The notes under the pieces were generated by a model, which was not told the DNA's origin, made no database searches, and was given only the letters and a program-made list of their open reading frames with translations. This document shows positions 14,200 to 62,748 of a DNA stretch of 64,000 nucleotides, piece by piece (the first letter of the stretch is position 1; each line of letters opens with the position of its first letter). The translations under genes and the position numbers were made by a program. The stretch lies in the NCBI RefSeq assembly GCF_964204645.1, contig NC_134032.1, positions 13,938,275 through 14,002,274 of the forward strand, written 5' to 3'. The stretch is from Tubulanus polymorphus (taxonomy: Eukaryota > Animalia > Nemertea).

Positions 14200-17100
14200 T
14201 TTTCTTTTATTGCACGCGCACCGATCATCATAGAAGACGTCGCCGTCCGGCTGTTCGTCGCGGTGGTTGTCGCCTCCCGAGGGGGAGCGACGCGGTGGCA
14301 GAGAGGACGAGATCAGCGTCGTAGCAGTTCCTGAGGTGGTGGAGGCGGAGCCGGAGCCGGAACCCGTGGTTGAACCGGACCTGGAGCCGGTAGTGGAGGA
14401 TGAGGAGGTAAGAGGAGTTCCTCCTGCCCCCGTGGAGCCGTTGGCCACTGCCGCAGTTTCGGCGCTGGACAGAGTTCGTAGCGGTGGTGTGGCGCCTCCC
14501 GAGGGGGAGCGACGCGGTGGCGGAGAGGACGTGATCGGCGGATGGCTTTAGAGTTTTGCTGTACTCTGATTTCATTATCTACTTTGCAATGAAATAGATT
14601 GCTGTTGCTGATGTTGAAGGTTTACAATTTTTACTGAAACCAGAGAGACATAGTTGAGGAGGTAGTCATGGAGAATGAGGAAGTAAGAGGAGTTCCTCCT
14701 GTCCCCGTGGAGCCATTAGCCGCTGCCCTGGTTTCGGCGCTGGACAGAGTTCTAAAGAAGGTGTACTGAAAGGGCACACAAGCACTCGTGAGGGCACCTC
14801 AAGATATTAAAGGCGGGGGACTGGATCCGCCCTTGATATATTAATTGTTTCTCCTGATTGTTAATGTATTTCTTTATTTTATATTTTACAGTGGAACCTA
14901 TATTAATTGAGACAGTGGAGGATGGTCCGGAGGACGTGAAAGAGGCCATAGACCTCTTTCACTTGAACCTTGGTCCTGTCTTGGACGACCAGCTGGCAGA
15001 CCCCGTTCCAGCTGCTGCCTCCCCGGATAGGCGCCCTAGGCAGCGGACCCTCCGGCAGCCGCACCCTGCTGCGCAAAGGTGGTCCCGTCGTGTGGACGGG
15101 CGGCTGTGGGAGGGGGAGTTTTATATTATATTTTATATTTTACAGTGGAACCTATATTAATTGAGACGGTGGAGGATGGTCCGGAGGACGTGAAAGAGGC
15201 CATAGACCTCTTTCACTTGAACCTTGGTCCTGTGTTGGACGACCAGTTGGCAGACTGCAATCCTGCTGCTGTCAGTTAGGCGCCCTAGGCAGCGGACCCT
15301 CCGGCAGCCGCACCCTGCTGCGCAAAGGTGGTCCCGTCGTGTGGACGGGCGGCTGTGGGAGGGGGAGTTTTATATTATATTTTATATTTTACAGTGGAAC
15401 CTATATTAATTGAGACGGTGGAGGATGGTCCGGAGGACGTGAAAGAGGCCATAGACCTCTTTCACTTGAACCTTGGTCCTGTCTTGGACGACCAGCTGGC
15501 AGATCCCGTTCCAGCTGCTGCCTCCCCGGATAGGCGTCCCATGCAGAAGGCCCTTTGACAGCCGCACCAGGAGGCAGCTATATGTAGAGGTGGTGAGGCC
15601 AGACTGTGGGAGGGGGAGGTTCCTCCCCAGGGGAAGCAACGTGTCGGCAGAGAGGAGGTGATCAGTCATGAGGCAGTTCCGGAGGTGGTGGAGCCGGAGC
15701 TTGAACCAGAGCCAGAGCCGGTTGTTGTGGAGGATGAGGTAAGAGGAGTTCCTCCTGCCCCCGTGGAGCCGTTGGCCGCTGCCCCGATGCCGCACCGAAG
15801 TGCGGGTGGTGGCTCGCGGTTCCGTGGGAGGAGCTTCGATCTTCGGATAGATCGAAGGCTCTCCTACAAGATTTAAAATCAGTTTTATTTAGGCGTGGGT
15901 ACAGGGAGTAGATGAATCTGGATGATCCAGTAACAAGGTACAGGGTGGTGGAGCGAGAGCTGGAGCCACTTCATGGAGGAGATGCTAGTGGAAGTAAAGG
16001 TGGTAAGAGGAGTTTTCCGCAGAGCAATTAGCTGTTTTTGAATTTCCTCAGCTACAAAATTTCATGCTATTCCAACTGGTTATATTGTATGCATCTGTAA
16101 TTTGAAATCTTATCGTCATTTCAAATCAAGATTGAAAGGATGTCACAAGAGTGTCCAAGATTGAAAGGATGTCACTAGTGTCCAAGATTGAAAGGATGTC
16201 ACTGAAGTGTCCAAGAATGAATATGCACTGTGTGCATAAGGAGGTTATGTGGAAAAAAAGGATTTACAACCATCGGCAATTTGTATATTCTTTTACAGGC
16301 AAAACTTACAGTGACGGTGTTGGACATGAAAAGAGGCTATCAACATCTTTCACCTGAATTTTTGACCAATTTTGGACGACCAGTTGGCAGACTGCAATCC
16401 TGCTGCTGTCAGTTAGGCGCCCTAGGCAGCGGACCCTCCGGCAGCCGCACCCTGCTGCGCAAAGGTGGTCCCGTCGTGTGGACGGGCGGCTGTGGGAGGG
16501 GGAGTTTTATATTATATTTTATATTTTACAGTGGAACCTATATTAATTGAGACGGTGGAGGATGGTCCGGAGGACGTGAAAGAGGCCATAGACCTCTTTC
16601 ACTTGAACCTTGGTCCTGTCTTGGACGACCAGCTGGCAGACCCCGTTCCAGCTGCTGCCTCCCCGGATAGGCGCCCTAGGCAGCAGACCCTCCGGCAGCC
16701 GCACCCTGCTGCACAGAGGTGGTCCCGTCGTGTGGGCGGGCGTTCTGTGGGAGGGGGAATTATGGGAGGTAAGCATCATCTCAACATCAATGAGATTTGA
16801 TATTGTACTAACCAGGTGGCGATCGCGTCACCGAAACCACCATGATGGCGATCCCACCATTTACGCCACCAGATGGAAATTTTACGCTTCATTAGCTAAT
16901 AACGAAAATGTTGCAGCCGCCGTGATATTTCAAGGTAAGACATATTCGATTTTAATCAATTAAATCTCGACATCGTCGAGAAGAAAATGCAGCCGTTGCA
17001 GCTGCCGCAGCTGCCCCAGCCGTCGATGCGACGGAAAATGGTAAGTATACACATATTCATGATCCTATTTTAGATATGTCCGTTTGTAGCCAGACATTTT

Positions 17101-18650
17101 TCGTGGATGGGTTTATATATACTTATGTAAAAATCGCAATCGGCAAATCTCATTTGCCCGGGCGGAACCAAGAATTCTAAATAAGAGCTGAAACGTTCGT
17201 ATTTTCAGTTGTACATAATGTATACACGCATACCAAGCGGTCCAGTTCCAGTTAAGATTTGACTCTGTAGAGTTAAAACATTAAAACATCAAAACGAATT
17301 AATTCTATAAATAAATGATCGAAAATATCCATTTCGATTGTGATCAAATTGATAAGTTTAACTAGATTCTCAAAGTCCACCAGATGGCGATCCCACCAGT
17401 TACGCCACCAGATGGCGATCCCACCAGTTATTACCAGATGGAAATTTTACGCTTCATCAGCTAATAACCAAAATGTTGCGGCCGCCGTGACATCTTAAGA
17501 CGTATTCAATTTTAATCAATTAAATCCTAACATCATGATTATTATTATATTATAGGAAGAAAATGCAGCCCCTGCTGCAGCCGTCACCGCCGATGATAAT
17601 TATGCGACAGAAAATAGTAAGTCTACACATATTCATGATCCTATTTTAGATCCGTCCGTTTGTAGCCAGACATTTTTGGCTGAGCTGCCCAAACTGTTAC
17701 TGATTTGTTGTCGCCGCACCTGCACCTGAACCAGTGAGCTCTAAACGGGCTCGAGTCGGACCAATTAAAGTAAGTTTGATTTGTGTCAAATCATTTTCAA
17801 GCTAATTTCAAATAAGTTTATTGATAATCTGGGCAGGGTTTTATAGACCACATCATTTTCTCCTAGGGGTAAATCCTCAACCTTCGCCCGATTTCATAGA
17901 CCGGGTTTCAATGTTGCCCCTAGCTGTAAATCCTCAACATAGGTGACAACCACCATTGTAACAATGATAAACTATGGTAATAACTGACAAATTTTTAAAT
18001 GTTTCCAATTGTCCGAGCGTTCGAACCACTTTTCAAGTGATGTTCACGTCTCTGCACCCACAGTTCATGGTTATTCATGAAGACTTGACCATTATTTCCT
18101 GTTTTAAGTCATGTAGATTATTATCATTGTGGTTCACCAATGATTATGAGGATATTCTATTTTTTTCAAAATCTGCATCGGAAAAAGAATTATCCCTGAA
18201 TCTCTCTGGTCCTACCGAGCTAATTCTGATACCGAACTCTCCAAACAGTAAGAAATCATTGAATGCTTCGATGATTTAGTCAATGTTGATCGTTTTGTTT
18301 TTTCCAGAGAGACGAGATACCGCCGTTAAGGCGATCACCGCGGCTTAGATGCCGTAGAGTAAGTTTGAATCGTTTACTGAGTTAGTGGTATTCCAGATCT
18401 TATAACGACTTAGAGTAGTGCCTCCATTTTTAAGAGCTTTGAAATATCAAAATACTTTCAAGATCACAATGATTTCTAGTTGTGGTTATTTTTCGATCTC
18501 TTTCATCTGAACCTTGGCTGTGGGAGGGGGAGTTACGGAAGGTAAGCATCATCCCAATTTGTTTATTCAAGTCATTGATGAGATAAGGCGGAATACTGCT
18601 GCGGATCCACGGTATCTTGTTAATTTCTTAACGAAATGTAAGTACAACTT
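14200..18650 (+). pseudogene. Inverted, scrambled mosaic of 3' exons of the microexon gene
   Basis: Exon 36 pieces at ~14215-14550, ~14660-14752 and ~15670-15912. Exon 35 copies start at 14892, 15146, 15395 and 16532 (last one 237 nt, frameshifted). Exon 33 copies at ~16980-17040 and 17556-17616; exon 30 at ~17730-17769; exon 32 at 18308-18358; exon 34 at 18572-18637. Many retain intron flanks; order is non-colinear and several are truncated. Confidence 0.8.
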
Positions 18651-19265
18651 TTTGCACTTATACTCTCTTACTCTCTCTTTTCACTGGTCACATCATTTTT
18701 AAAGTACTGGCTGTAATGTTGTAAAACTATCTTGTTTTACGTTATCAATTGTTCGACCGATAATCAGAAGATTATGTATCAAAAGAAATCCTAAATTATC
18801 TCAAATCCTGACAAAACTTGAGAGTGAGAAGCAAAAAACATTTTCATGCCGGTATCATGGTTCCCTCAGTTATATCAATTCAGAATTCCCAAGTATTTCA
18901 TGGGTGTTTTTCAATTTTCCCAAATGGCAATGAACACATATCGTCATGCAACAGTCAAAATTTTAGCGGTGACTGGTTGATAAAGGTGATTTTCAAGGGA
19001 AATTGCTGAAGAAAGTTGCCCTTGGCAAATACAACATGTGAAATATAATGAATTTCCCAAGTATTTTCCTGATATAAGGAAAATTTTTCAAATTCCCAAA
19101 TATTTCCAAACCGGGAATTATTTTTACAAAATTCCCAAGTTTTTCCCAATTTCCCTGTTCTGTGGGAACCATACGGTATAATCCGCACATCGTAAACGGA
19201 CGCGTAGCAAAAATCGAAAAAATAATTTGGTGTCTATAATATGAGAATGTACCTTTATAGGAATA

Positions 19266-22160: not shown

Positions 22161-22499
22161 ACCTGAATACATATGTACCAAGCACCTAACAGCACCTGCA
22201 CCTAAAAGGATCTGTTCCTGTACCTGAGAGCATCTGCACCTGTACCTAAAAGGATCTGCACCTGTACCTTATAGTATCTGCACTTGGAAAATTGACCGCA
22301 ATTTTTGCAAAGAGTAATTTTTACTCAAATTGTTGAAAATTAGAAAATATTGACGAGGCGAACACGTCGAAAAACGTTTGAAACGCAAAATATTGTTTTA
22401 GAAGAAATCGGTTTAAAAAAATGCCGAGATATCGATCAATGGTTTTTCGAATGATCTGAACTCAATTGAGCTGATTATCAATTTATCGACTGATCGATT

Positions 22500-23150
22500 T
22501 TCAACTGACTACTACGACCGAGTCACTGACTGACAAAGACTTACTGACAACTACTGAATATGATGACTTCGATGATTGAGTGACTACGACCGAGTCACTG
22601 ACTGACAAAGACTTACTGACTACTACTGATCATGACTACTGTGATTGAGTGACTGCTACAGAGTCACCAATACTATTACTATTAATGACAAAATGACTAC
22701 TACGAGTCACTGACTACAACTTAGTGACTACTATTAACCAAAAAATGACCACTACAACTGACTTATAAAGACTTACTGACTACTACTGATCATGACTGCT
22801 GTGATTGAGTGACTGCTACAGAGTCACCAATACTATTACTATTAATGACAAAATGACTACTACGAGTCACTGACTACAACTTAGTGACTACTATTAACCA
22901 AAAAATGACTACAAAAAATGACTACTACAACTGACTTATAAAGACTTACTGACTACTACTGATCATGACTACTGTGATTGAGTGACTGCTACAGAGTCAC
23001 CGATATTATTACTACTAGTAACAAAATGACTACTACGAGTCACTGACTACAACTTAGTGACTACTACTAACCAAAAAATGACTAGTATGACTGTGTAACT
23101 TTACTGAATGACTACACTACTACTGCTGATTAACTGACTACTATGACCGA
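22500..23150. repeat. actact/gactgact-rich compound tandem repeat just 3' of the stop codon
   Basis: About 160-180-bp units (anchor aaagacttactgac). Confidence 0.85.
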
Positions 23151-23273: not shown

Positions 23274-23741
23274 CTACTCCCTGTACCCACGCCTAAATAG
23301 GACCGATTTTAGATCACGAAGAAGAGCCTTCGATCTATCCGAAGATAGAAGCTCCTCCCACGGTCCCACGGAACCGCGAGCCACCACCCGCACTTCGGCG
23401 CGGCATCGGTCGCTGGACAGAACTCTGTCCAGCGCCGAAACCGGGGCAGCGGCCAACGGCTCCACGGGGGCAGGAGGAACTCCTCTTACCTCCTCAACCT
23501 CCACGACCATCTCCTCTTCTACCGGTTCCGGCTCCGGCTCCGGCTCCGGGACCGGTTCAAACACCGGTTCCGGCTCCAGCTCCGGCTCCGGCACCGGCAC
23601 CGCCTCCACCACCTCCGGAACTGCCACGACGCCGATCTCCTCCCCTCTGCCACCGCGTCGCTCCCCCTCGGGAGGCGCCACACCACCGCGACGAACCGCC
23701 GGACGGCGTCGTCTTCGATGCCGAGCGGTGCGCGTGCCCGT
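23274..23741 (-). CDS. Terminal exon (36), Arg-rich then Pro/Glu-rich (PEPEPE)
   Basis: Acceptor ttttttgcag|ACGGGC in phase 0; open 155 codons to TAG (ORF 23274..23759); GC-rich against AT-rich flanks. Confidence 0.8.
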   Translation of the reverse strand, partial: TGTRTARHRRRRRPAVRRGGVAPPEGERRGGRGEEIGVVAVPEVVEAVPVPEPELEPEPVFEPVPEPEPEPEPVEEEMVVEVEEVRGVPPAPVEPLAAAPVSALDRVLSSDRCRAEVRVVARGSVGPWEELLSSDRSKALLRDLKSVLFRRGYRE

Positions 23742-26700
23742 CTGCAAAAAAGAAAACATTCATTTACTAAATGATCGGTTGAAAAGTGATTTTTTACAGA
23801 AAATTTTCGGATCAGTAACCGAGCTGAAATAATGTAACAATATTCTAAAGGGTTAGAAAATAAAGCGAAAAAAAAAATGACGATGGCTCGCTGAAAATGA
23901 AAGTATTATTAAAGAAAAGATATTATAAGTGATTCACAAAAACTGTTCGTGTGAGAGAAATTGACATTCGAAATCAAAACCGAGAGAAATATAAAAAAAA
24001 CATGAGATGATGCTTACCTCCCGTAACTCCCCCTCCCACAGCCGCCCGTCCACACGACGGGACCACCTCTGTGCAGCAGGGTGCGGCTGCCGGAGGGTCC
24101 GCTGCCTAGGGCGCCTATCCGGGGAGGCAGCAGCTGGAACGGGGTCTGCCAGCTGGTCATCCAAGACAGGACCAAGGTTCAAGTGAAAGAGGTCTATGGC
24201 CTCTTTCACGTCCTCCGGACCATCCTCCACCGTCTCAATTAATATTGGTTCCACTGTAAAATATAAAATAGAAAGAAATACATTAACAATCAGGAGAAAC
24301 AATTAATATATCAAGGGCGGATCCAGTCCCCCGCCTTTAATATCTTGAGGTGCCCTCAAGATATTTTAGGAATTTCTTTTTCCATTTTATAAAGAAATAT
24401 CAAGTATTCCCTCATGATGGCTATCGAATAGCCTCGGGCAACAAAATTTCAAAATTTTCTGGGGAGAAACACTTAAGACCCCTTTCATCCCTTCACGAGT
24501 GCTCATGTGCCCTTCAGTAAACCTTCCAAAAATCCTGGCTCAGCCCTTGTAGATTTACAGTGAACCCAGTGTAGCTAGTAATCTCATTAATACAAAATGG
24601 TTGACTTTCCACTTGAAGCGTGATTGATTGCCAATAATTTGTGACATCATCATGCAGCAGAATGTGGGATGCGGAAAGAAGACAATATCAGTCTCCATGA
24701 GTGACAATGATGGGCTGGTTGAGAGTTTAGGTTTGTCGGGACAGGGTTACTACAGTACAGCACAGAAGTAACTAAACATTTCATCATTGTATTGTTCAGT
24801 CACATGAACAAATAAATAGGTGTCATACCATCAGCGAACCATCACTTAACCATCAGTGAACCCCTGCCATAACCGCAAACCATGATTCATGATGATTTGA
24901 AAATAATTCTAAATGGTAGGCATGGAAACTTGTTAAAATTGATCTAGTTCATAAAATGCAGTCTATTTTCTCCGATTCAAATCAGTTCAAGAAGACTTTT
25001 TTGGCAATGCTTCAATAAACAGCGTAAAATGGATGCAAAAACGATGGTTTATTCAGACCGCGCGATTTCACTGGTCGTATTTAAACCAAATTTGATGAGG
25101 TATGTGTTTAAAACAATGAGCGACGTATGGTATATGGAGTATATTACTTAACTAATTACTTACTCACCAAATTACTCAATTAACCTTTTCTTCTCTGTAT
25201 ATATATACCCCTGTTTTTAGTCTCACACCTGACGATGATCTCTAGGGTGAGATCGAAACGTCGTGTCCTTATGTTTTAGATTGTTTCAATAAATAAATTC
25301 TCGATTTTAGAATTCTTTTAATTTTATATTTATTTTTTTGTAAATAAAGTTGGTTTTTATCTTATTAACCCTTTCAGTGCCGACTGATCAATACCCTATA
25401 GTGCTGGAGATAATTTGAAAATTTTGAAAAATTCCGCCCTAGTGTGTTGAATAACGGGAATAGCACTACAGTGCGTCTACACCACGGCGCGGTATATCGT
25501 TAGTTACATTTCTAGGCTGTACCGTCAATAAGACCCGGGGCTTGATGAGGCAGTGGCTGCGTTACTGTGGCAAGCGAGGATCAGCTCGTGGTTACTCCTC
25601 AGTTACCGTGCTTCAATTTCGTCGACACTTCCCGATTGAACTGTAGCCGACTCATCGCTTTATCAATACGCGAAAGTTGCTCGAACAAAAATTCATTTGA
25701 TTATATTTGAATTTTGTAAGCCAAAAAATCGAGTTCGAAAAATAAACTAATTTCATCGCGTATCAACCAGTGTATTTTTGCGCCATCTGGTGTACGCAGC
25801 CAGTACCTTATTCAATGTACATTGAGGATACTTATCTCAACACGAGCGGCGGGGGGGGGGGGGGGGGGGGGATGAAAAATGATGTGATCAGTGGAAAGAG
25901 AGAGGAGAGAGTATAAATGCAAAAAGTTGTACTTACATCGCGTCAAAAAATTAAGTAAATACCGCGGATCCGCGGCGATATTCCGCCTTATTTCTTCGAT
26001 GACTGTAAAATAAATAAATGAGAAAAATTGTTAGTATTTCATTAAATCATGGACGATCAATAGGAGTTTTACGACGTGGACAATACAGTCAAAGTCCGTT
26101 ATACCGCCGCCATACTCCATCAGGAGTGACATGATTTTCGGCATTTTAACGTGCTGGATCCAGTTCCACAAATGAGTTAACTCTGAACTCAGAATCTAGT
26201 TCTACATTTGCGAGAGTTAACACTGAACTCAGAATCTAGTTCTACATTTGCGAGAGTTAACACTGAACTCAGAATCTAGTTCTACATTTGCGAGAGTTAA
26301 CTCTGAACTCAGAATCTAGTTCTACATTTGCGAGAGTTTATTCTGAACTCAGGATCCAGTTCCACAGATGAGTTAGATTTAACTCTGAACACAGAATCCA
26401 GTGCTACAGTTACGAGTTAAAGTTAACTCTGAACTCGGGATCCAGGACCCAGTTCCACAGTTGTGATTTAGAGTTAACTAAATTAATCATCAGTTATCAA
26501 CAGTAAGGCGCTCAGTAACATCTTTCATATTTCTGTTCAAATCAGAGACAAATTCAGTATTTCTTGTCATAAAATGGTAACACATACCGAAAAATCAGTA
26601 ACAGTTTGGGCAGCTCTGCTAAAAATGTCTGGCTACAAACGGACATATCTAAAATAGGATCATCAATATGTGTAGACTTACCATTTTCCGTCGCATCGAC

Positions 26701-29700
26701 GGCGGCTGCGGCAGCTGCATTTTCTGCCTATAATATAATAACAATCATGATGTTAAGGTTTAAGAAAACAACAAAAAACTTTGTCAAAATTTATGCAGTT
26801 TCTAAAAGCGTTTCGATAACACGAATCGTAATTAGAGAGATAATGGGGCTAATTCCCTATATGAAATCAAAAGCTGAAAGAGAGCCTGCAAACAAGAGCA
26901 TTTCAAGAGCTCAACTAATGCAGCGCAAAGTTTCCAAACAAACCAAGAAATCACAATTTCAAAGTTTTTCTTGATTTCTTGTTATAGTACATTCGCCGTT
27001 TATGTATAGCAGTTCCGGTCCATTGGATAATCCTTTCATTATCGCTTTCATGAAATTTGAATAGTAGGGAACTGGCACGCCAGCTATCCCTTCAGATGGC
27101 ACCGCTTAGGTATGTGAGACAATCTAATGGGACAGAAAGTGAATTTCACAGACGTCGTCTGTGCGACAAGAAGTCATCAAATTAGAGCATCGATATTTTG
27201 TCGCGCATCTCTTATTGTATTAATAGTGAGCACTGGATCATATCATTACGGTTAAAAATACCCGACTATTTGATATCTCTAATTTGAGTAGTTTTCACCT
27301 GAATATATGACAACGCAAGGGCTCTAATAACTTACTCTTCGGCGTCTCAGCCGCGGCGATCGCCTCAGCGGCGGTATCTCGTCTCTCTGGAAAAAACAAA
27401 ACAATCAACATTGATTAAATCATCGAAACATTAGATGATTTCTTACTGATTGGAGAATTCGGTATCAGAATAGCTCGGTAGGACCAGAGAGATTCAGGGA
27501 TTCTATATGTGAATAGCTCGGTAGGACCAGAGAGATTCAGGGATTCTATATGTGAATAGCTCGGTAGGACCGGAAAGGTTCAGGGATTCTACATATGAAT
27601 AGCTCGGTAGGACCGGAAAGGTTCAGGGATTCTACATGTGAATAGCTCGGTAGGACCGGAAAGGTTCAGGGATTCTATATGTGAATAGCTCGGTAGGACC
27701 GGAAAGGTTCAGGGATTCTATATGTGAATAGCTCGGTAGGACCAGAGATTCAGGGATTCTATATGTCTTCCTGTTCATTGACGTGTCAGTAATGATCAAC
27801 ACATTCAGTGTATTTGATGCATTATAATTATTTTCACTTATAGTTCAAACTTACATCAGCTTGCGGCGGCGGCGGCGGCGGCGTCGCAGGTGTTTCAGTC
27901 TAAAAAGTAAAAAAACGATATTTCCATCGGTTATAAAAAGATGAAAATGATTCATTTCAACTTAACATAATAAAACTTGGTTCCACAGTTCAGGACCCAG
28001 TCCCACAGTTACAGAACCTGCCTCCGCAGTACTGTTCTGGACCCAGTTCCACAGTTCAGAGTTATGATCTACTAAAGAGTTACAGATGCTGGATCCTAGT
28101 TTTCCAGCCAATGATATTCAGTTAGTTCCGTGCGCTGGTCATCAAGCCGATTGTCATAAATTTCTAGATCTCTCCCTGTCCCGCCGCCCCAGAATTAGGT
28201 ATTTTTACTTTTTTTTGGTTTAGATTTTTTGGTGCCACAAGATCCAAAGCAGAAGAATTCTACACTATTTTAATTCTTTTTCCGATGCAGATTTTGAAAA
28301 CAATAAAATATCCTCATAATCATTGGTGAACCACAATGATAATAATCTACATGACTTAAAACAGGAAATAATGGTCAAGTCTTCATGAATAACCATGAAC
28401 TGTGGGTGCAGAGACGCGAAAATCACTTGAAAAGTGGTTCGAACGCTCGGACAACTGGAAACATTTAAAAATTTGTCAGTTATTACCATAGTTTATCATT
28501 GTTACAATGGAGGTTGTCACCTATGTTGAGGATTTACCGCTAGGGGCAACATTGAAACCCGGTCTATGAAATCGGGCCACGGTTGAGGATTTACCCCTAG
28601 GAGAAAATAATGTGGTCTATAAAACCCTGCCCAGATTATCGAACTTAAAATGATTTGACGCAAATCAAACTTACTTTAACCGGTCCGATGCGTGCCCGTT
28701 TAGGGCTAACGGGGTCCTATAAAATAAAAACAAGTTGAAATCAACATCCAGAATTTTCAAACATATTTCTGAAGGAAATCTCAATTTCATATTATCTTAA
28801 TAATCTTTGGTGAGCCACGAAAATGATAATCTACACAACTAAAAAATGGAAATGAATAATCATGAACTGCGGGTGCAGAAACGACAACACCACTTGCAAA
28901 AAGGGCTTCAACAAACTCTCCACAATCACAAATTCAGAGGCACGTACTACCATCGCGAAAATCTTGTGCCATTTTTTCCATTCCCAAAATAGATGTTCAA
29001 GCCATTTGGAAAGTGGTTTTTTTTCACATCGACAAACTCTCGTCGCAATCACAAATCATACTTGTCGTAAGCTTAAACTTTCACAAGATCCCGTCGGCAG
29101 GCGGACAGACGGAGAGACAGGCACACAGACGGAGAGACAGGCACACAGACGGAGAGACAGGCACACAGACGAACGGACTGTAAAATGATTTGATGAAATT
29201 CAAACTCACCGATGCCGGTACCTTGAGCTTCCTCTTCTATAAAATGAAAAAATCAACTTTAGTTTAACGACGTCAACAAAAATTCAGACATATTTCATCT
29301 GCAGTCGTTTGTGTTCAACTGTTAATTCAATAGAAATGTTCACAATATTTACCGGCACATTCACGCACGTGTGGAATTCATTTCTCTACATAAAAAGAAA
29401 AACAAGAGCTCAATTTAGCATTTATGAAAATCAGAATAAATTATCTCAAATCTCGCATTTTTTTAATAGCTTGGTTGACAAGGTAGACTATTGAAATATC
29501 ATTTCCATATCATTTAAAAAAAAAAGAACTCGCTCAGCGCGATAAACACAGTTTTTGAAGGAAGAGGGAACTATCGATTGGGCAATATACATATGTCCAA
29601 AACAATGATCCTTGGAAAGTTCGAATTCTGCACACAAATGTGATCAAAAAAGAATAAACGTGTGTTTTTCAATTTTTCCATCATTCAAGCCGGGATTCTC

Positions 29701-41700: not shown

Positions 41701-42655
41701 TCTGGCTGTTAGAAAAGAACAATAACATTCACATTCAGGTCAAAATCGATAAGTTACGAAGGGTATCGAACTCCGATTAAATTCTGTAACTTTGATGATA
41801 ATTCTGACGAAAAACTCAAAAGAATCGGTTGTTTCAAGGTAACAGAAGAATTTATACTTACTGCCTTTGCTGCTGTTTGTTTACGCTGATGACATGAAAG
41901 AAAAAAAGAGAATTCATTTTAATTTTGTTATTTCACGTTCACACGTTAAATACAGTAAATATAAATACATCAATAAAAGAGATACATAAAATATATGCAC
42001 ATATATCCGTGAGCAAATGTTTCCAGATTTTACTGTGTGCTAATGTTATATAAAAAAAACTTGATTATAAAATAATTCTTAGTGACGGGAATTTATTTCA
42101 TTGAAAGCAGGATTATTTTCATGACTTTGTTCCTGGTATGAAATATACGATGAAAATCACAAACAAATCATCGTCTGTCAGAAAGAAATAAACACGACTA
42201 GAAATTCCATGATACAGAAAACTTCTCACTTACTTCTGGTGCAGCTGTTGTTGTTGTCGCTGAATTCTGTCGCAATAAAAAAAAAAGAGAATTCATGAAT
42301 TTCTTGCATTATTTCATATTCAGTAGCAAACATTAAACACAGGAGATCATATTATAATTAAAACAAAAGACAAGTTTTATATCTGTATTTGGAAAAACTC
42401 TGATATTTCTGTATTCGTTTGTTTTAGGGTTTTATTTAAACAATATAAAGTCCATTAAACAGAAAAATTCAAACTTACTGTATTCGTCGCTGTTGGTCTG
42501 TTCTGTTGCAATAAAAGAAAAGAGAATTCATTAATTTCTTGCATTAAAACTCTGATCTTTCTGTAACTTAGATATTTCTGTATTCGTTTGTTTTACAGTT
42601 TGATTCAAACGATATAGAGTCCATGAAACAGAAAAATTCAAACTTCTGTTGTCGT

Positions 42656-42694
<39 letters not shown>

Positions 42695-48559: not shown

Positions 48560-49370
48560 AAAATGGCCACCGGGCTGAAGAGGTATGAGGTAGGGAGAGG
48601 GATCGCCGCCGACGGGGCTTTGTTTCTTCAGTTTTCTTCTGCCGTTCGTTCGACCATCTCATTTTTTCAACCAGTCGCTGCTGTGATGATATTCTCCTGC
48701 AGAAATTTGAGATCTCAAAAAGATCGGCTTCAAAAACATCGGCGGCGATCAGGATTGAGGAGCGGGATGGGTGCGGAAAGTGGCGCCATTTCAGACGACA
48801 GAATATCGAGTTAAAACATCGTCTGAAATATCAGTTTACCTCAATAGATGATCGTCAAAAACTATTTCTGCGCCGTCCAAACGATCTCTTCTGTGATATT
48901 GGACGTAAAATCTACCGCAAAACGATCTGATTTAACGGATGTAAAGAGATTTAAATCGAAAAAATCGCCATCACGTTTACTTACATCGCTCGATTTAGCA
49001 TGAATGATAATGCGCGCAACGGGCGAGCCAATCACCGTGACGGAAACAATAGGATCCAATCAACGGAACGGATACTATCGGATGCCGGACCACGTGGTGT
49101 GTTTGAATCGGCGGCATTCGGATACGGATTCTATAACCGAACCGTCGAAATGATATATCATTATCAATTTCAATTGATGTATCGAAATATCAATTCGACT
49201 ATCGATAGAAATAGAAATGATTCTATCGTAGATCTTTTAATATCAGTATCGGATTTTTTTTAGATTTTACCGACGCCCGACGACCAAACAACTCACATCA
49301 TCCTCGATTGCCAGGGGCCGGATGAAACGTTGGACGCGGACCGCGTATCGGCCATCGGCACTATCTAGGC
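48560..49370 (-). promoter_or_regulatory. CpG-rich candidate promoter and 5'UTR exons of the microexon gene
   Basis: Local CpG enrichment; CCAATCA at 49028 and 49056; minus-strand donor GAG|gtaaac at 48840 and acceptor ttctgcag at 48697. Confidence 0.35.
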
Positions 49371-49378
49371 TATGAACC

Positions 49379-50144
49379 CAGGGGCGGATACAGGGGGTCG
49401 CACCTGCGGCACGTGCGACCCCTTGAATTTGTGAAGTGCCCTTTTCAAAAAGATTCTCATGAAAATACAGCGCCCGCAAAATCCGACGTCCGGACCTATG
49501 AAATGAATTAGAATTTGAATTATTGCGGAAAAGGGCACTTTATATTGCAAAAAATGGCACGTTTTATTGAATCAATTGCCAAAAGGCACGTTATATTGTC
49601 AAGAAGGGCACATATATTGCGAAAAAGGGCACGTTCATTTGCCAAAAATTAAGAAAAGGGCTCCAAAAATTGTTTGAAAAATCCTGTTATGGGCACGATT
49701 AATCTCCAAAATGAGGGCGCATTCAATCATATTACCGTACTGATGTGTTCTGACAGGGCACAACTCTGTGACTATCGGCACGTTCAAATTGCCAAAAAAA
49801 TCCTAAAGGCACATTGTATTGCCAAAAGGGCACGTTCATAAAAATTCAGAAAAGGGCTCAAAAATAGTTGTCTCAAAAAAATGACTAATAACTATCACAT
49901 TCTAAAAGGGGCACATTCAAATTGCAATAAATACTAAGAGTGGTTTGTTATTGCCTAAAATTCAGACAAGGGTATTTTTGCTATTTTGATGCCTCAGATG
50001 CTCTGATAGCTGGGCTTCAAATTTTTAACTGATTCTAAACCCCTTCGTACCTTCGGTGCTCGCCTCGTCGTCGTAATACAAATCCGGACAGGTGCCCTCT
50101 TGAATGAGTGCTACCCCTTGAATTTGGGCCTAGATCCGCCCCTG
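49379..50144 (+). mobile_element. 766-bp MITE with CAGGGGCGGAT TIRs and 5-bp TSD
   Basis: GAACC|caggggcggat ... atccgcccctg|GAACC; internal aaaagggca subrepeats. Confidence 0.8.
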
Positions 50145-53535: not shown

Positions 53536-54470
53536 TGATACTGTCCACGAGACGCAACTGATAGCGGCACTGTCCACGAGACGCAGCTGATAGCGATACT
53601 GTCCACGAGACGCAACTGATAGCGATACTGTCCACGAGACGCAACTGATAGCGATACTGTCCACGAGACGCAACTGATAGCGATACTGTCCACGAGACGC
53701 AACTGATAGCGATACTGTCCACGAGACGCAACTGATAGCGATACTGTCCACGAGATGCAACAGATAGCGATACTGTACACGAGACGCAACTGATAGCGAT
53801 ACCGTCCACGAGATGCAACAGATAGCGATACCGTCCACGAGACGCAACTGATAGCGATACTGTACACGAGATGCAACTGATAGCGATACCGTCCACGAGA
53901 CGCAACTGATAGCGATACTGTCCACGAGACGCAACTGATAGCGATACTGTCCACGAGATGCAACTGATAGCGATACTGTACACGAGATGCAACTGATAGC
54001 GATACTGTACACGAGATGCAACTGATAGCGATACCGTCCACGAGACGCAACTGATAGCGATACCGTCCACGAGACACAACTGATAGCGATACTGTCCACG
54101 AGATGCAACTGATAGCGATACTGTCCACGAGACGCAACTGATAGCGATACTGTCCACGAGATGCAACTGATAGCGATACTGTCCACGAGACGCAGCTGAT
54201 AGCGGCACTGTCCACGAGACGCAACTGATAGCGATACTGTCCACGAGACGCAACTGATAGCGATACTGTCCACGAGACGCAACTGATAGCGATACTGTCC
54301 ACGAGATGCAACTGATAGCGATACTGTACACGAGATGCAACTGATAGCGATACTGTCCACGAGATGCAACAGATAGCGATACTGTACACGAGACGCAACT
54401 GATAGCGATACTGTCCACGAGATGCAACTGATAGCGATACTGTACACGAGACGCAACTGATAGCGATATA
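53536..54470. repeat. 29-bp minisatellite, ~32 copies
   Basis: Same unit; the right flank 54470-55090 is homologous to ~2030-3040. Confidence 0.95.
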
Positions 54471-56937
54471 CAAATTGTTGTTTTCGTGAAGCAGTCAGTG
54501 TCTTCCGGTTCACATCAATAACAGCAAATTGGAGAAACAGAAAAAAAAAATAAAACAAAATATTAAAAAAGATTTGAAACACATCAAAATATCAGAAAAC
54601 GAAGAGTGACGAGGTATTTACCTTATTTGCTTTTGCTGTTTGTCCAATTGGCCATTGAGCAAGTTGACAGTTGCATGTTGACCACAGGGAGAGTTGACAG
54701 TGTTCAAGTTGATCAGTTTGAGTTGAAAGTAGCAAGTAGTTGCCGTTCCTGTTGTTGTCATCGTCATTTTTTTACAATATAGGGGATATATATATATCCT
54801 TTCAGACATCATTTTTTTCATACACAATTTTTTTCTTACATAATCATAATCTATTTTGATTATAATAATTCTTTTAATTGTAAAAATGTTTCTGTTTTTT
54901 CCCTAAACATACTTGTTAGAACTCAAGTCAATCAAAATGTTGATTGTATCAAGATTTTCATAATTGACTTTCATGAGGTCACATGAGACTTGAAGTAATG
55001 TTTTTACAGGTTCGATCCCTGAAGATACACATTATTTTTCCTATTATTTATTTATTCTTTTTAACACTTTGGATTCTTTTGAACCCAGAATTAGTTCAAC
55101 AAAAAATTATTAAATGCGAAACACAATTCGCAAAAACAAATAAACAGAAGAATATTTCTCATTTTCGATAAATATAAAAATCTTTTACAAAAACTACAAA
55201 CACTAAGGGATCATTCATTTGTTACGTACGCATAAAATTTGAATTTTTCAACCCCCCCCTCCCCCTCCGTACGCAAAATCGGCCATTCTTTCATATACAT
55301 TAAGCATTACAGTACACAATTGCACTGATCCCCCTCCCCTAATGCGTACGTAATAAATGAACGAATGACCGATAAGGTTGTTGACCATTGCATGAATGCC
55401 ACTACAGCAAGAATTAAGGCGACATTTGTCCAATAGTAACTTCTATCAATGTTTGATATGGTTAATTTTAGCTTCCTTTCACTGATTCATCAAAGATTAA
55501 CATATCGTAAGCCTACAGTTATACTTGTTATACGGCCAATATTAACAGTTGACAACTGCCAATCAACCACAAACTACTGCGTTATGAAATGAGGATTTTA
55601 CACTATAGTTTCAATGTCAGATGTATATCTTATGATTATCAGTAAAATAACAATTGAAGTAGATACTCTATTGATTAAGTAATTACCAACTTTGGAGAAA
55701 GATAATTAATATCATCATAGTTCTGAAAAGTATATTGTAATTTTGGCACTCTCTCACATGTCAGTTTTACGCTTATGTCAACTCTAGTCATCACTTATAA
55801 ATATCTAATTAACATTTTTGAGATAGTTCAAAAAGTCCAGTCGAGCTCAGTGCAGTTGAGATCAGATCAGAACAGGGCCGACCTGCGAGTCGTGAGCTCC
55901 AGATACTATAACGAAAAGGCCGACCAACGAGTCGCGAGCTTTGACATACATCAATAAATAATATTCACGTCAGATCATCGAAAATATACTACATGTAGTT
56001 AGTATTCTCCTCGTCTGGATTCGGATTTTAAGAGATGTTCGACAAAGGATCGCGTCCGATAGTAGAGCACACCTCTTTAATAGTCTCTCTACAACATACG
56101 CACGGTATCAACTGGTCGACCAGCACGAAATTACACCTTTCTGCTGATCGTGGAATTGGACGAAAACAGTTTAAATCTATTCGTTTCAACTGCATCAATC
56201 ATCGTGTACCAGATACATGTACAGAGTGTTTGCAACTGTCACCTTGGTAAAGTGGGATAACTTGTATTCAGGTTGTTCGATATACATAGTCCTGGACCAA
56301 ACGCCCACGAACTACGGGACAGCCTTACCAAGGAGCAGGATCAACCAGCAAACAAGCCAAAAGAATATGAGGTTCTGTACACCACATAAGAAGTGTTTCT
56401 AATCAAGACTTTATATCATTGTAACTGTTTATTACCCCTTTATTTATATATTTCTAAGAATTTGAATTAATGTTTACCATTATTGACGTTTATCACTTTC
56501 AAACTGCTACTGATTTAAAATGCTCGTACAGATTCTTTTGTTCCCTATTGATAGGAAGTGATGGTAGAATGGCCGAGGTGGCCAACTGCCCCAGTCGTAG
56601 TTGGTGGGCTGAGAGTAGCAGTTGACAACTGCTACAAGTACGATGAACTACGACTTGCAGCAACTGAGAAAATCAGAGAAAAAGAAGACTAAGGAATATG
56701 AGATTATAACAAACAGATTATCTCGCGCTCGCGATACTCTATCTATCAGTGGCCATAAAGAATGATTGCCATGTTTCCCACGGTGAATTTTGATCTAAGC
56801 CGAACCCGGTCTTTAATCTTTCAGAAAATGCCATGAACTGTTCCGGAAAGGATCACAAGGGTCCTCCAGGGGGCGAAGGAATCAATGGACACACCCTCCA
56901 CAGTCGCTCTATCAATAACTACAGGGACAGAATTTAT

Positions 56938-59170
56938 CACGAGCGGACGCAGTAAAGGTGGTCAAGCAAAGGGGAAGAGTAAGAGCAGATCAAATAGAGC
57001 TAGTCCACCGGGACTTGGTAATTTTATCAATAACTACAGAGACAGAATTCATCACGAGCGGACGCGGTAAAAGTTGTCAAGCAAAGGGGAAGAGTAAGAG
57101 CAGATCAACTAGAGCTAGTCCACCTGGACCTAGTCATTTTATCAATAACTACAGAGACAGAATTCATCACGAGCGGACACGGTAAAAGTTGTCAAGCAAA
57201 GGGGAAGAGTAAGAGCAGATCAATTAGAGCTAGTCCACCTGGACCTAGTCATTTTATCAATAACTACAAAGACAGAATTTAACAAAAATTTGTCATTTAT
57301 ATTTCAGGAAATCGAAACAGTATTCGAGGTCAAGATGGGGCGTCAATTAGGGCCTCGTTTCAACGCACACTTGTGCGTAAATTTAAGGACATTGTGGTAG
57401 ATTTGCCCCGGGTGTACGCCATTGTGGTAGTTCGTGGGCCGAAAGTAGCAGTTGACAACTGCTACGAGTGCGATGAACTACGACTTGCAGCAACTGAGAA
57501 AATCAGAGAAAAAGAAGACTAAGGAATATGACTAAGGAATATGAGATTATAACAAACAGATTATCTCGAGCTCGCGATACTCTATCAGTGGCCATAAAGA
57601 ATGATTGCCATGTTTCCCACGGTGAATTTTGATCTAGGCCGAACCCGATCTTTAATCTTTCAGAAAATGCCATAAACTGTTCCGGAAAGGATCACAAGGG
57701 TCCTCCAGGGGGCGAAGGAATCAATGGACACACCCTCCACAGTCGCTCTATCAATAACTACAGGGACAGAATTTATCACGAGCGGACGCAGTAAAGGTGG
57801 TCAAGCAAAGGGGAAGAGTAAGAGCAGATCAACTAGAGCTAGTCCACCTGGACCTAGTCATTTTATCAATAACTATAGAGACAGAATTCATCACGAGCGG
57901 ACGCGGTAAAAGTTGTCAAGCAAAGGGGAAGAGTAAGAGCAGATCAACTAGAGCTAGTCCACCGGGACCTAGTCATTTTATCAATAACTATAGAGACAGA
58001 ATCTATCAAAAATTTGTCATTTATATTTCAGGAAATCGAAACAGTATTCGAGGTCAAGATGGGGCGTCAATTAGGGCCTCGTTTCAACGCACACTTGTGC
58101 GTAAATTTAAGGACATTGTAGTAGATTTGCCCCGGGTGTACGCCGTTGTGGTAGTTCGTGGGCTGAAAGTAGCAGTTGACAACTGCTACGAGTGCGATGA
58201 ACTACGACTTGCAGCAACTGAGAAAATCAGAGAAAAAGAAGACTAAGGAATATGAGATTATAACAAACAGATTATCTCGTGCTCGCGATACTCTATCTAT
58301 CAGTGGCCATAAAGAATGATTGCAAAGTTTCCCACGGTGAATTTTGATCTAGGCCGAACCCGGTCTTTAATCTTTCAGAAAATGCCATGAACTGTTCCGG
58401 AAAGGATCACAAGGGTCCTCCAGGGGGTGAAGGAATCGATGAACACACCCTCCACAGTCGCTTTATCAATAACAGAGACAGAATTCATCACGAGCGGACG
58501 CAGTAAAGGTTGTCAAGCAAAGGGGAAGAGTAAAAGCAGATCAAATAGAGCTAGTCCACCTGGACCTAGTCATTTTATCAATAACTATAGAGACAGAATT
58601 CATCACGAGCGGACGCGGTAAAAGTTGTCAAGCAAAGGGGAAGAGTAAGAGCAGATCAACTAGAGCTAGTCCACCGGGACCTAGTTATTTTATCAATAAC
58701 TATAGAGACAGAATCTATCAAAAATTTGTCATTTATATTTCAGGAAATCGAAACAGTATTCGAGGTCAAGATGGGGACGTCAATTAGGGCCTCGTTCCAA
58801 CGCACACTTGTGCGAAAATTTAAGGACATAACCATTGATTTGCCGATAGCCGCGGTCGTATTTCGTGGGCCGAAAGTAGCAGTTGACAACAAGTGCAATG
58901 AACTAAGACTTGCAGCAACGTAGAAAATAAAAGAAATAGAAGACTAAAGAATATGAGAATATGAATATCAACAACAGAGACAGAATTCATCACGAGCGGA
59001 CGCGCCCAAGGTTGTCAAGCAAAGGGGAAGAGTAAGAGCAGATCAACTAGAGCTAGTCCACCTGGACCTAGTCATTTTCATTAACTACAGAGACAGAATT
59101 CATCACGAGCGGACGCGGTAAAAGTTGTCAAGCAAAGGGGAAGAGTAAGAGCAGATTAAGTAGAGCTAGT
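56938..59170 (+). pseudogene. H2A: Nine histone H2A 5' fragments (about 21 codons, ATG changed to ACG)
   Basis: Units translate to (T)SGRGK[G/S][G/C]QAKGKSKSRS[N/T]RAS, versus the invertebrate H2A tail MSGRGKGGKAKGKSKSRSSRAG. Similarity stops before GLQFPVGR. Confidence 0.8.
58744..58923 (+). pseudogene. Intron-less KH-like copy (exons 13+14 fused)
   Basis: EIETVFEVKMGTSIRASFQRTLVRKFKDITIDLP..VFRGPKVAVDN.. runs without the intron. Sister copies at ~57308-57522 and ~58032-58246 carry a 1-nt deletion (gatggggcg vs gatggggacg). Confidence 0.75.
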
Positions 59171-59323
59171 CCACCTGGACTTGGTCATTTTATCAATAAC
59201 TACAGAGACAGAATTTATCAAAAATTTGTCATTTATATTTTCAGGAAATCGAATCATAATTCGAATTAAAGGGGGGCATCAATTAGGGCCATGTTCCAAC
59301 GTACACTGAGACGTAAATTTCAG

Positions 59324-62300
59324 GAATTCGAAACAGTTTTCGAGTTGAAGTTGGGGACGTCGCTCAGGGCCTCGTTCCAGAAGACGCTAATGCGAAAAAA
59401 TCCGGTCATGTGAAAAAGATTGATTTCAAAGGAAGTGTAGCTTACCCTAGGGGGAGCCACTTTGATTACATAAATTAAACAGTCAAAGGGTTAAAATGCT
59501 CTATACATTTTGTATTCAATTCTTTACTTTCACGTTAAAATGACTTTGGATATAACGACTTATCTAACTATTTGTTAGTTTTATTATAAACCTGAGAATT
59601 CCGTCCAAAATAAAACATTTTAATAATTTCATATCGATTATAAACGAACAGATTACTGAAATTCATTGTTGTATATAACGAGCTTTCAGTGAATGACGTT
59701 TATTTCTCATCACTTTCAAACTGCTACTGATTTAAAATGCTCATACAGATTCTTTTGTTCTCTATTTACAGCAAGTGATCGTAGATTTGCCGCGGGTTCA
59801 CGCAATTGTAGTAGTTCGTGGGCCGAAAGTAGCAGTTGACAACTGCTACGAGTACGCCCACGAACTACGCGACCGACTCGTCGCGCAGGAGGTAAGAATA
59901 ATAGTGTTAATAATATCCATACTTGATTATGACAACTAAAATATGAGAGTATATTAATGTTTCTTCGGTTGTGGGGGCCATCTAATCTTACTCAGTGTGT
60001 GCAGTCCCAGCATCATCCAGCCTGCAATCCTCGGTGCGATATAGGGCACACGTTAACCCCTATTGAAGGATGTCATCATTTTTCATTTATATTTCAGGAA
60101 ATCGAAACAGTTTTCGAGTTAAAGTTGGGGACGTCGCTCAGGGCCTCGTTCCAGAAAACGCTGACAAGAAAATATCCGGTAATGTGAGAAAGATTGATTT
60201 CAAAGGAAGTGCAGCTTACCCTAGGGGGAGCCACTTTAATTACATAAATTAAACAGTCAAAGGGTTAAAATGCTCTATACATTTTGTATTCAATTCTTTA
60301 CTTTCACGTTAAAATGACTTTGGATATAACGACTTATCTAACTATTTGTTAGTTTTATTATAAACCTAGAACATGGAAATTTGAAATCATGAACTTGAAA
60401 ATGAAAAATGATTAAATCTAAATGTTGCTCGTTTATTTTATAGGTCACCAGAAAGCGACGCCGATCCGTCGACGAGGTCAGTTTGAATTCTATCGAATCG
60501 TTCTCCCGTTATTACTTTCAATCTGTCTTTTCGTCCATAGATAGGATCTCACAATCGCCAGTGGTATAAGCATTGTTCAGCAATTCAAGGGTGCTAATGT
60601 CCTTGAAAACCTGGCAATCTCATTGAATCAGAAAGATTGGGGAATTTGATAGATTTTTACCAAAATCCTGGAAAACACGGGGGATTTATAAATTCTTAAT
60701 ACTACAAAATCAAGGAAAAAAGTGGTCTACCCTCGGTCGGTCGGTCGGTCGGTCGGTCTGTGTCTGTCTGTCTGTGTCTGTCTGTCTGTGTCTGTCTTGT
60801 AGACAGGATCTTGTTGTGCTGACTTGTGGTCGTAAGTTTTATGCTTTCGACATGTTCTATGATTGTGGCGACATTAAAGGTCATTGGTTTCTGTGTGTTG
60901 GTTTTTGAATATTGAAAAAAGTCCTATTGTCCGAGCGTCGGTGGAACCACTTTCCAAGTGATGTTCACGTCTCTGCACCCACAGTTCATGGTTATTCATG
61001 AAGACTTGACGATTATTTCCTGTTTTAAGTCGTGTAGATTATTATCATTGTGGTTCAATATAGATTACGACTATCTGAAAGTTGAGATTTACCAAAGAAA
61101 TGTGTATCAAAATTCTGAATGTTGATTTCAACTTTTTTTAAAATATTTTACAGCAACCTGTAAGCCCGAAAATTCGGCGAGACGAGGTAAGTTTCAATTT
61201 CATTAAATCATTTTCGATATTGATGTTAAATATTGATAACCTTAGCCCTGTTTCATAGACTGTATATGAAATATAAAAAAAAAAACTTACTGAATTTTCT
61301 TTCTTTTATTGCAACAGAAACCAATAGCTCCAGCAGCGGCAGCGGCCATTCCGGCACGAGTAAGTTTCAATTTTATAATTAAGCGTCATTCGTTTCCCGT
61401 GTATTCCCTCGTAGATGATCCTGTCTTAACATCAACTTTAATCCATTAGCACTCAGGAATTGCACTTAACTTTATGTAAGATATTTATGCTAATGACATC
61501 AAAATCATTTTTCATATACAGATATCTATATAAACCTGTCCAGTTTTTATGTCAACTGTGTTTATTAACGTTTGTTGCTGAACATGAAATTTAAAACAAA
61601 ACTGAATTTTCTTTCTTTTATTGCAGCAGAAACCAACAACAACAGCGACAGCAGCCATTCCTGCACGAGTAAGTTTCAATTTTATAATTAAGCGTCATTC
61701 GTTTCCCGTGTATTCCCTCGTAGATGATCCTTTCTTAACATCAACTTTAATCCATTAGCACTCAGGAATTGCACTTAACTTAATGTAAGATATTTATGCT
61801 AATGACGTCAAAATCATTTTTCATATACAGATATCTATATAAACCTGTCCAGTTTTTATGTCTACTGTGTTTAACGTTTGCTGCTGAATATGAAATATAA
61901 AAAAAAAAAACTTACTGAATTTTCTTTCTTTTATTGCAACAGAAACCAACAGCAGCAGCACCGAAGGAAGTAAGTCAGCATTTTTCTGTATCATGGATTT
62001 TCTGTCGTGTTCATTTCTATCTGACAGCCAATGTATTTCATACCGGGAACAAAGTCATAAAAATTCTCCTGTTCGTTTTATTGAATAACGTTACGGAATC
62101 AAAACAATATCTATAACGAAGCATCCGTCACTTAGAACTCATTTATTACGTATATTGATACCTACGTGTGCTACTGAACATAAAATAACAAAACTAAAAT
62201 TAATTCTCTTTTTTTCTTTCATGGCATCAGTGCAAACAAATAACAACAACAACAACGAAAGAAGTAAGTTTTGGCCATGTTTTTAGTTTTCGCTCATCGC

Positions 62301-62642
62301 TGACATTACTGATATCTTTCCTCGCAGTCTTAAATCGGCTCCACTCAATTTCTCTCATGAAATGTTTTCCATGTTCGAACTACACGTGATCATGAACTTG
62401 AAAAATGATTAAATCTAAATGTTGCTCGTTTATTTTATAGGTCACCAGAAAGCGACAACGATCCGTCGATGAGGTCAGTTTGAATTCGTGTAGATTATTA
62501 TCATTGTGGTTCAATATAGATTACGACTATCTGAAAGTTGAGATTTACTAAAGAAATGTGTATCAAAATTCTGAATGTTGATTTCAACTTTTTTAAAAAT
62601 ATTTTACAGCAACCTGTAAGCCCGAAAATTCGGCGAGACGAG
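59324..62642 (+). CDS. Inverted paralogous chain of 11 phase-0 exons in shuffled order (partial paralog or pseudogene)
   Basis: Exons 59324-59404, 59772-59891, 60098-60178, 60444-60476, 61154-61186, 61318-61359, 61630-61668, 61943-61969, 62231-62263, 62441-62473, 62610-62642. All are AG/GT-bounded, stop-free and multiples of 3. No start or terminal exon found. Confidence 0.5.
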
Positions 62643-62748
62643 GTAAGTTTCAATTTCATTAAATCATTTTCGATATTGATGTTCAATATTGATAACCTTG
62701 ATAGCCCTGTTTCATCTGTATATCAATGATCAGCGTGCAGCACAAACA

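Follow-up and report, generated by a model that had tools for sequence, protein, structure and literature searches.

Inverted exon clusters flanking a putative orphan gene of the ribbon worm Tubulanus polymorphus are probably inherited and locally renewed debris of a young segmental duplication

In the ribbon worm Tubulanus polymorphus, a window of 64,000 nucleotides (the whole stretch of DNA analysed, positions 13938275-14002274 on NC_134032.1, which is contig C8 of a 268-Mb assembly in 77 contigs) contains a minus-strand gene of many short exons that is bracketed by clusters of inverted and scrambled copies of its own exons. We found that the gene and the nearer part of its left cluster belong to a segmental-duplication unit of about 50 kb that is present nine times, and we conclude that the inverted clusters are probably debris of duplication in a young amplified family, both inherited and renewed locally, and now and then subject to gene conversion. 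Seen in this family context, the arrangement is not tailored to one gene, as it first seemed to be.

Results

The gene and the proximal left cluster are parts of an amplified unit

Left-cluster DNA, right-cluster DNA and the gene body all match the same set of loci, namely nine full units (the window included) on contigs C8, C9 and C11 and one locus of fragments. By megablast, the window is collinear with four paralogous loci over positions ~600-13532 and 16509/16636-50532 at 92-97% identity, and the collinear part includes satellites, spacer and introns, the single exception lying at 13.5-16.6 kb. With several copies of more than 1 kb at 90% identity or higher, non-coding DNA included, the nine ~50-kb units have the properties of a segmental duplication or ampliconic family. 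On contigs C9 and C11, many of the copies fall in the ~3 Mb nearest the low-coordinate end. Beyond position 50532 the window no longer matches the other units, while three of the four aligned loci (Ld, Le and La) still match each other.

The proximal left cluster is a patchwork of seven pieces. Using the exon numbers of an earlier reading made from the sequence alone, and a prime for inverted copies, these are exon 35', the tail of exon 33', the head of exon 33', exon 31' with the 5' part of its intron, the 3' part of that intron with exon 32', a 50-nt tail of exon 35', and exon 34'. The pieces, their order, their junctions and their inversion are identical in the window and in the four paralogous units, and by coordinates the cluster lies opposite to the gene and 4-5 kb past its 3' end in all nine units. 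This shared layout and placement indicate that the patchwork arose once, before amplification, and was carried with the unit; the copies are not a feature private to one gene. Identity of the patchwork between units is 88-96%, not above the 94-97% of introns. Because it is conserved no better than introns and its exon parts are the most diverged, there is no sign of selection for complementarity to the gene.

Comparison of the window with itself gave solely inverted matches of both clusters to the gene (23.2-37.2 kb), with 75-99% identity and E-values that are effectively zero (Table 1). The sequence-only reading had described the copies as inverted, scrambled in order and often accompanied by intron flanks, and all three descriptions hold, including the example pair at 59314-60077; read in the sense direction, the left cluster runs 36, 36, 35, 35, 35, 36, 35, 35, 33, 33, 31, 32, 35-tail, 34. 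A typical module is a short exon with its intron flanks, so that most of the matching bases are intronic. Matching sequence amounts to ~3.1 kb on the left and ~4.1 kb on the right, with longest perfect runs of 110 nt and 275 nt, respectively. A simple palindrome was rejected as a description, since the coordinate sums rise instead of staying constant, cluster and gene positions rising together. The scrambling resolves in part into collinear sub-blocks (35' then 36' on the left; 13'-intron-14' and the run from 33710 to 31945 on the right), and by their alignments these appear to have been tandemly duplicated and internally deleted.

Table 1. Positions of the duplication unit, clusters, matches to the gene and exons in the window (nt)
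Feature	Position	Strand	Inverted match in gene	Remarks
Shared segmental-duplication unit	600-50532			Satellites, inverted patchwork, spacer, gene; megablast collinearity with four loci
Distal left cluster, window-specific insertion	13863-16321	+		Tandem inverted exon 36'/35' pieces at 14192-15940; GC (guanine plus cytosine) 54%
Left match	14192-14477		23764-23420	75%
Left match	14786-15120		24361-24025	97.6%
Ancestral inverted patchwork	16322-18700	+		~4.5 kb past gene 3' end; seven pieces, same layout in five units
Left match	16512-16783		24273-24003	96.7%
Left matches	16997-17101 and 17520-17706		26.6-26.76k	
Left match	17728-18192		28716-28271	
Left match	18192-18365		27501-27329	
Left match	18557-18700		26019-25875	
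Spacer, patchwork to gene stop codon	18701-23243			Common to all units; 92-94% identity to paralogous units
Exon 36	23275-23741	-		Ends in stop (23277)
Exon 35	24018-24253	-		Splice sites and open frame
Exon 34	25937-26002	-		Splice sites and open frame
Exon 33	26682-26727	-		Splice sites and open frame
Exon 32	27335-27386	-		Splice sites and open frame
Exon 31	28674-28716	-		Splice sites and open frame
Exon 14	36603-36722	-		Splice sites and open frame
Exon 13	37090-37170	-		Splice sites and open frame
29-nt satellite	53537-54468			Same as at 4557-5641; beyond 50532, where match to paralogous units ends
Right cluster, older part	56492-59313	+		About four ~720-nt units of intron-less exons 13+14; 82-89% identity to gene
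Right cluster, younger part	59314-62730	+		Exon 13-intron-exon 14, second exon 13 piece, blocks 32831>31949, 33710>32727 and 32199>31945
Right match	59314-60077		37180-36417	764 nt, 97.4%
High-identity tract (right match)	60078-60371	+	37190-36896	99.3%; adjoins 97.4% copy of same region
Right match	60390-61270		32831-31949	95%
Right match	61509-62487		33710-32727	92%
Right match	62478-62730		32199-31945	

Two cluster blocks occur at this locus only

The distal left insertion (~2.5 kb, as assembled) is absent from the four paralogous units, where the flank at 13862 directly abuts the ancestral exon 35'. Plus-strand matches resembling exon 35 number seven in the left region of the window as against one in each other unit. 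The right cluster (56.5-62.7 kb, as assembled) likewise has no counterpart in the paralogous units, where matches fall solely in the units' own gene bodies. When all nine genes are included in a tree, the segments 59314-60077 and 60078-60371 branch with the gene of the window (support 0.976), and the former differs from every one of the nine genes at 20-24 of 764 sites.

In the older part of the right cluster, fused modules of exons 13 and 14 keep the upstream intron end and acceptor and lack the intron between the exons. That exons of the right cluster stay in frame is a consequence of their lengths, as exons 13 and 14, like the measured micro-exons, are multiples of three; the fused frames terminate in stops, with a 1-nt deletion in two of three. 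Each ~720-nt unit also holds two to three interleaved copies of a 115-nt repeat (56910-59220), for which no DNA or protein match was found elsewhere in the genome. One frame of this repeat reads like the N-terminal tail of histone H2A, but capture of such a tail was rejected as unsupported, given that lack of matches.

Mis-joined or collapsed family copies could in principle have created the blocks confined to this locus, since repeats abound in the region, which belongs to a family of nine paralogous units, and tandem arrays are prone to mis-sizing. However, the copies carry many private substitutions and junctions present in no gene copy, as the sites just counted illustrate, the proximal patchwork recurs independently in nine places, and the contigs are of chromosome scale. 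An assembly error is thus an extremely improbable source of these blocks.

The copies are degraded but descend from coding sequence

Most cluster copies have lost what an exon needs. The acceptor of exon 34' is changed from AG to AA in four units; a 4-nt deletion precedes the core of exon 31' in four units, and in the window exon 31' has no acceptor; exon 33' is fragmentary; the exon 35' copies are truncated before the donor or have a 5-nt deletion or a 1-nt insertion; and the exon 36' copies carry out-of-frame indels. No coherent plus-strand reading frame connects the exons of the patchwork, the fused exon 33'/31' having a stop or a frameshift in the conserved frame. Plain retrocopies or processed pseudogenes were rejected as an origin, as most modules keep intron flanks, and so was capture by a Helitron or Pack-type transposon, as the genome matches of cluster DNA are confined to units of the family itself, with two in each (gene and patchwork).

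Between cluster and gene, synonymous differences per synonymous site (pS) are 0.2-0.8 and replacement differences per replacement site (pN) are 0.03-0.2 in exons 31, 32, 34 and 13. These values agree with the earlier suggestion of a once-functional source and support descent of the copies from coding sequence shaped by purifying selection. Two details of that reading needed adjustment. For exon 34 we counted seven synonymous codon changes, where six had been given, together with the same four replacements (E>D, I>T, L>V and R>K). Of the five exon 35 copies called near-identical, two deserve the term (97.6% and 96.7%), and the other three show 93%, 92% and 84% identity.

The gene is under constraint and appears to be an orphan

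Eight exons (13, 14 and 31-36) were defined by polypyrimidine-AG acceptors, GTAAG donors and open frames, and further micro-exons, many of 30-45 nt, extend up to ~49 kb. The exons are short, with many lengths that are multiples of three, and the encoded segments, also short, frequently have a high content of arginine, alanine or proline. In five units the frames of the eight exons are intact and all indels are in frame; variant codons comprise 23 synonymous and 20 replacement changes over 286 and 809 sites (pN/pS 0.31, falling to 0.22 without one aberrant exon). We therefore consider this a real gene under constraint. Exons 31, 32 and 33 could not be joined into one frame, as the frames supported by substitutions do not connect directly, so that either an exon is missing from the model or exon 33 is alternative. 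Exon discovery by conservation among paralogous units yielded nothing, the four loci being too similar to each other.

Judged by the homology searches made, the gene is an orphan. Exons were searched singly, the sole multi-exon query being the natural intron-less frame of exons 13 and 14 at 58744-58920 (59 residues). A Pfam scan of 28 open frames of the gene and clusters gave nothing above noise; the KH family profile did not match, and exons 13 and 14 and their fused copies had no Pfam family even at E=10. A word search with exon 35 found no match, the ESM Atlas gave no usable match, and an exhaustive HMMER search of the exon 13+14 frame against 1.84 billion representative proteins gave no accepted homologue. 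Its sole match, a repetitive AHNAK-like protein (E=5.5e-4), was treated as spurious. AlphaFold2 modelled the 59-residue frame with a predicted local distance difference test score (pLDDT) of 47.7, which likewise yielded no identity.

Within the genome, exon 14 matches are confined to the nine units and their fragments. Exon 35 finds at least 45 more distant relatives outside the nine units (48-57% amino-acid identity), at C6:0.65-1.75 Mb, C3:0.42-1.33 Mb and C8:15.07-16.31 Mb, many of them ~33 kb apart; by these matches, the family would be part of a far larger superfamily, specific to the lineage and arranged in extensive tandem arrays. At the fragment locus (C11:3011504-3016739), the pieces come from exons 13/14, 34 and 35 and point in either direction, a mixture indicating that scrambled fragments are a recurrent by-product in this family.

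Exon parts of the copies are more diverged than their introns

In the cluster copies of exons 31, 32, 33 and 13/14, the exon part is far more diverged from the gene than the adjoining intron, in several copies about tenfold, and the differences lie chiefly at synonymous sites. In unit Ld, exon 31 differs at 9 of 33 exon sites and at 4 of 404 intron sites; at 59314-60077, 13 of 201 exon sites and 7 of 563 intron sites differ (p=0.0003). Exons 34 and 35 do not show this exon-limited effect. Among the genes themselves, exons are no less variable than introns: 6-9% of sites vary in the measured exons, as compared to 2.3% in the flanks next to them and 4.7% across the alignment of 14.7 kb.

The cluster-type copies of exon 32 vary in 18 of 51 columns, ten of these at third codon positions. 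The conserved frame is phase 0, which encodes an arginine-rich peptide with a pN/pS of 0.16 and no stops; read in either of the two remaining frames, the copies contain stops and the ratio is above 1. In a comparison of ten copies, exon 32 (27335-27386) and its inverted copies (18310-18361 in the window) are hypervariable, and the 40 nt upstream are almost invariant. CpG decay was rejected as the cause of the divergence, since only about one third of the exon changes affect CpG sites and many of the changes swap one arginine codon for another by transversion. The pattern could stem from recurrent short-tract conversion by functional exon haplotypes that have since disappeared or lie outside the sample, from a mutation process particular to exons, or from selection that favors altered nucleotides in the mature mRNA.

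Clusters and genes have exchanged sequence

The gene of unit La (C11:391001-401000) departs from the four other genes at 9 of the 51 sites compared in exon 32. All nine states occur in cluster copies, a cluster-type marker lies 17 nt upstream, and the tract comprises seven synonymous codons and one replacement codon; on this evidence a cluster-to-gene conversion tract of roughly 350-440 nt is likely. In the right cluster, the tract at 60078-60371 shares all eight variants private to the window's gene, of which the neighbouring copy has three (8 of 16 over its full length). Together, the two tracts indicate that gene conversion between clusters and genes does occur, the direction at 60078-60371 being ambiguous.

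The clusters had been proposed as a reservoir for conversion, and the exchange itself is borne out by these tracts, but an adaptive role is not supported, as the exchanged differences are nearly all synonymous. If the clusters were kept as donors, i.e., as a functional archive of exon variants for conversion into expressed genes, one could point to La exon 32 as a gene tract traceable to donor copies, to the 99.3% tract lying beside a 97.4% copy, and to the existence of six cluster-type exon 32 haplotypes. However, the protein gains nothing from such transfers, and the differences among cluster copies are overwhelmingly synonymous (pN/pS 0.16-0.19), with no diversification of the protein. Only one or two events are seen across five units, the right-cluster tract cannot be assigned a direction, and conversion between nearby inverted repeats needs no selected role. 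We consider the chance that the clusters are maintained as donors to be slim.

Other repeats in the window

The left part of the unit holds satellites of 29, 28 and 72 nt and a complex repeat field of ~93 nt, common to all paralogous units (1854-1988 and 4557-5641; 7506-8273; 2375-2645 and 6015-6277; 8500-12930). Satellites are plentiful in the window, and GC varies between 33% and 54%. Inside the gene, a tandem duplication (40022-41737 / 41734-43488, 93.5% identity) holds micro-exons, and the copy number of this duplication seems to vary between paralogous units. An element of ~150 nt occurs in gene introns and in both clusters (18004-18149, 28314-28454, 32151-32294 and 60927-61070); exon 31 and an exon near 32.06 kb, which share this ~150-nt flank, look like internal paralogues. 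An inverted pair at 49362-50144 / 62749-63519 (86.5% identity), with other copies at C8:6.72 Mb, C5:10.58 Mb and C11:3.23 Mb, is probably a transposon separate from the gene-derived clusters.

Discussion

In the history that we consider probable, the comparisons show that a complex rearrangement before amplification set a 2.2-kb patchwork, taken from the gene's last exons with their intron flanks as seven inverted pieces, 4.5 kb past the gene's 3' end, where every unit inherited it. The locus in the window, as assembled, later gained two further rounds: a block of ~2.5 kb of tandem inverted exon 35/36 pieces and, outside the 5' boundary of the unit, an inverted copy of part of the gene that spans 6.3 kb (exons 13-14 and 18-24) and adjoins the older intron-less array. 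The scrambled order may be due to template switching or inverted duplication, with tandem duplication and deletion as later events. The copies would be non-coding pseudo-exons with no dedicated role, and their proximity, inversion and high similarity could lead to occasional short-tract conversion with the gene.

Several observations weigh against this history. The splice sites of exon 32' are perfectly kept in five of five units, with no stop in the conserved frame, and its copies differ mostly at synonymous sites (pS 0.40, pN 0.06), which is not expected under free decay. Likewise, pS values of 0.2-0.8, set against a divergence of 1-7% in adjoining introns, are more than a single duplication with neutral drift can explain. 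In addition, the unit-level alignments comprise the window and four paralogous loci, the four other full units being known by match position. The same features of exon 32' would suit a reading in which coding function persists in part of the cluster exons, foremost in exon 32', either in a plus-strand transcript or as trans-spliced exons of the opposite strand, as in Drosophila mod(mdg4). Besides its intact acceptor and donor and its low pN/pS, exon 32' carries an in-frame codon deletion and no phase-0 stop, and the exons concerned are all short, many with lengths that are multiples of three. However, the scrambled exon order, the stop or frameshift in the fused exon 33'/31', the acceptor lost from exon 34' in four units and the absent acceptor of exon 31' leave no coherent plus-strand frame, and continued coding use is very unlikely.

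Control by antisense RNA was the other function proposed for the clusters. Transcripts that read through from the gene, or that start on the minus strand beyond 62.7 kb, could pair with the pre-mRNA or mRNA and restrain the family through small interfering RNAs (siRNAs) or PIWI-interacting RNAs (piRNAs). Such a role could be accommodated by a patchwork that travels with every unit, by the long complementary blocks in both clusters, and by the layers of copy age, from 99% down to 75% identity, that repeated renewal would be expected to leave. On the minus strand, no AATAAA or ATTAAA occurs in the 2.7 kb past the stop (23277 down to 20572), and the first AATAAA, at 18567, lies inside the inverted patchwork. 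The exon-limited synonymous divergence could itself be escape from small RNAs that target mature mRNA.

The family is, moreover, amplified, orphan and equipped with arginine-rich segments. In Drosophila, hairpin RNA (hpRNA) loci suppress young amplified families, as Nmy and Tmy do the Dox family, and families of the present kind with hairpin suppressors are known in Drosophila simulans (bioRxiv 10.1101/2021.08.05.454923; PMC10292708). As in those systems, the clusters consist of inverted sequence from a presumed target in a young amplified lineage-specific family, with copies of several ages and an arm derived from the target gene. Whereas hpRNA loci are near-perfect inverted repeats within one transcription unit that act in trans, neither cluster here folds on itself: no internal inverted repeat is present in 13.5-18.7 kb or 56.4-62.8 kb, and the only partner arm, that of the gene, lies at a distance of 5-29 kb rather than within one short transcription unit. 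Complementarity is mostly intronic and is lowest in the exon parts, conservation between units is no higher in the patchwork than in introns, and the presence of the patchwork with every unit needs no selection, the units being young. We thus regard antisense control as unlikely. A fuller version is distinctly doubtful, in which antisense small-RNA clusters were co-amplified with a possibly selfish arginine-rich family and the synonymous divergence is the trace of escape and chase. Equally doubtful is the course such a contest would have taken, with genes altering their mRNA but not their protein, and clusters refreshed by inverted copies and conversion to give the layers at 99, 97, 92, 84 and 75% identity.

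Non-coding, partly rearranged copies of a multicopy gene in an orientation suited to antisense RNA are also found among the pseudogenes that give rise to antisense endo-siRNAs and in the piRNA control of Stellate by Su(Ste). The present copies share these features, being non-coding, partly rearranged and oriented for possible antisense RNA, but they lie in cis beside every gene copy and not at a separate locus. In conversion donor arrays, such as the pseudo-V genes of chicken immunoglobulin and the cassettes of antigenic variation, truncated copies without promoters lie near the expressed gene. Here, too, the copies are close to the gene and at least one gene tract is traceable to cluster-type sequence; unlike in donor arrays, the transferred differences are synonymous, do not diversify the protein, and come from rare events.

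The closest resemblance to the history that we favor, duplication debris in an amplified family, is offered by segmental duplications and ampliconic families, with which the locus shares ~50-kb units of 92-97% identity that include introns and intergenic DNA, rearranged partial copies at the edges, and footprints of conversion. Typical ampliconic families differ in that the patchwork here derives solely from the unit's own 3' exons, has seven fixed pieces and was amplified together with the gene, and in that synonymous sites in its exon parts are far more diverged than the introns beside them.

What is noteworthy is a large, recently amplified family in a ribbon worm, apparently orphan, with nine 50-kb units and dozens of distant relatives, whose short exons have synonymous sites about ten times more diverged than adjoining introns, both between gene and cluster and among cluster copies. 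The locus shows how duplication-prone regions build scrambled inverted exon patchworks and then spread them by amplification of the unit. We give the functional readings a low probability; of all the features, the exon-limited synonymous divergence most merits further attention. If antisense small RNAs were involved, suppression of amplified families by copies of themselves, as in Drosophila, would extend to a distant animal group, and the locus would be one of the few places where the DNA itself records escape by synonymous change.

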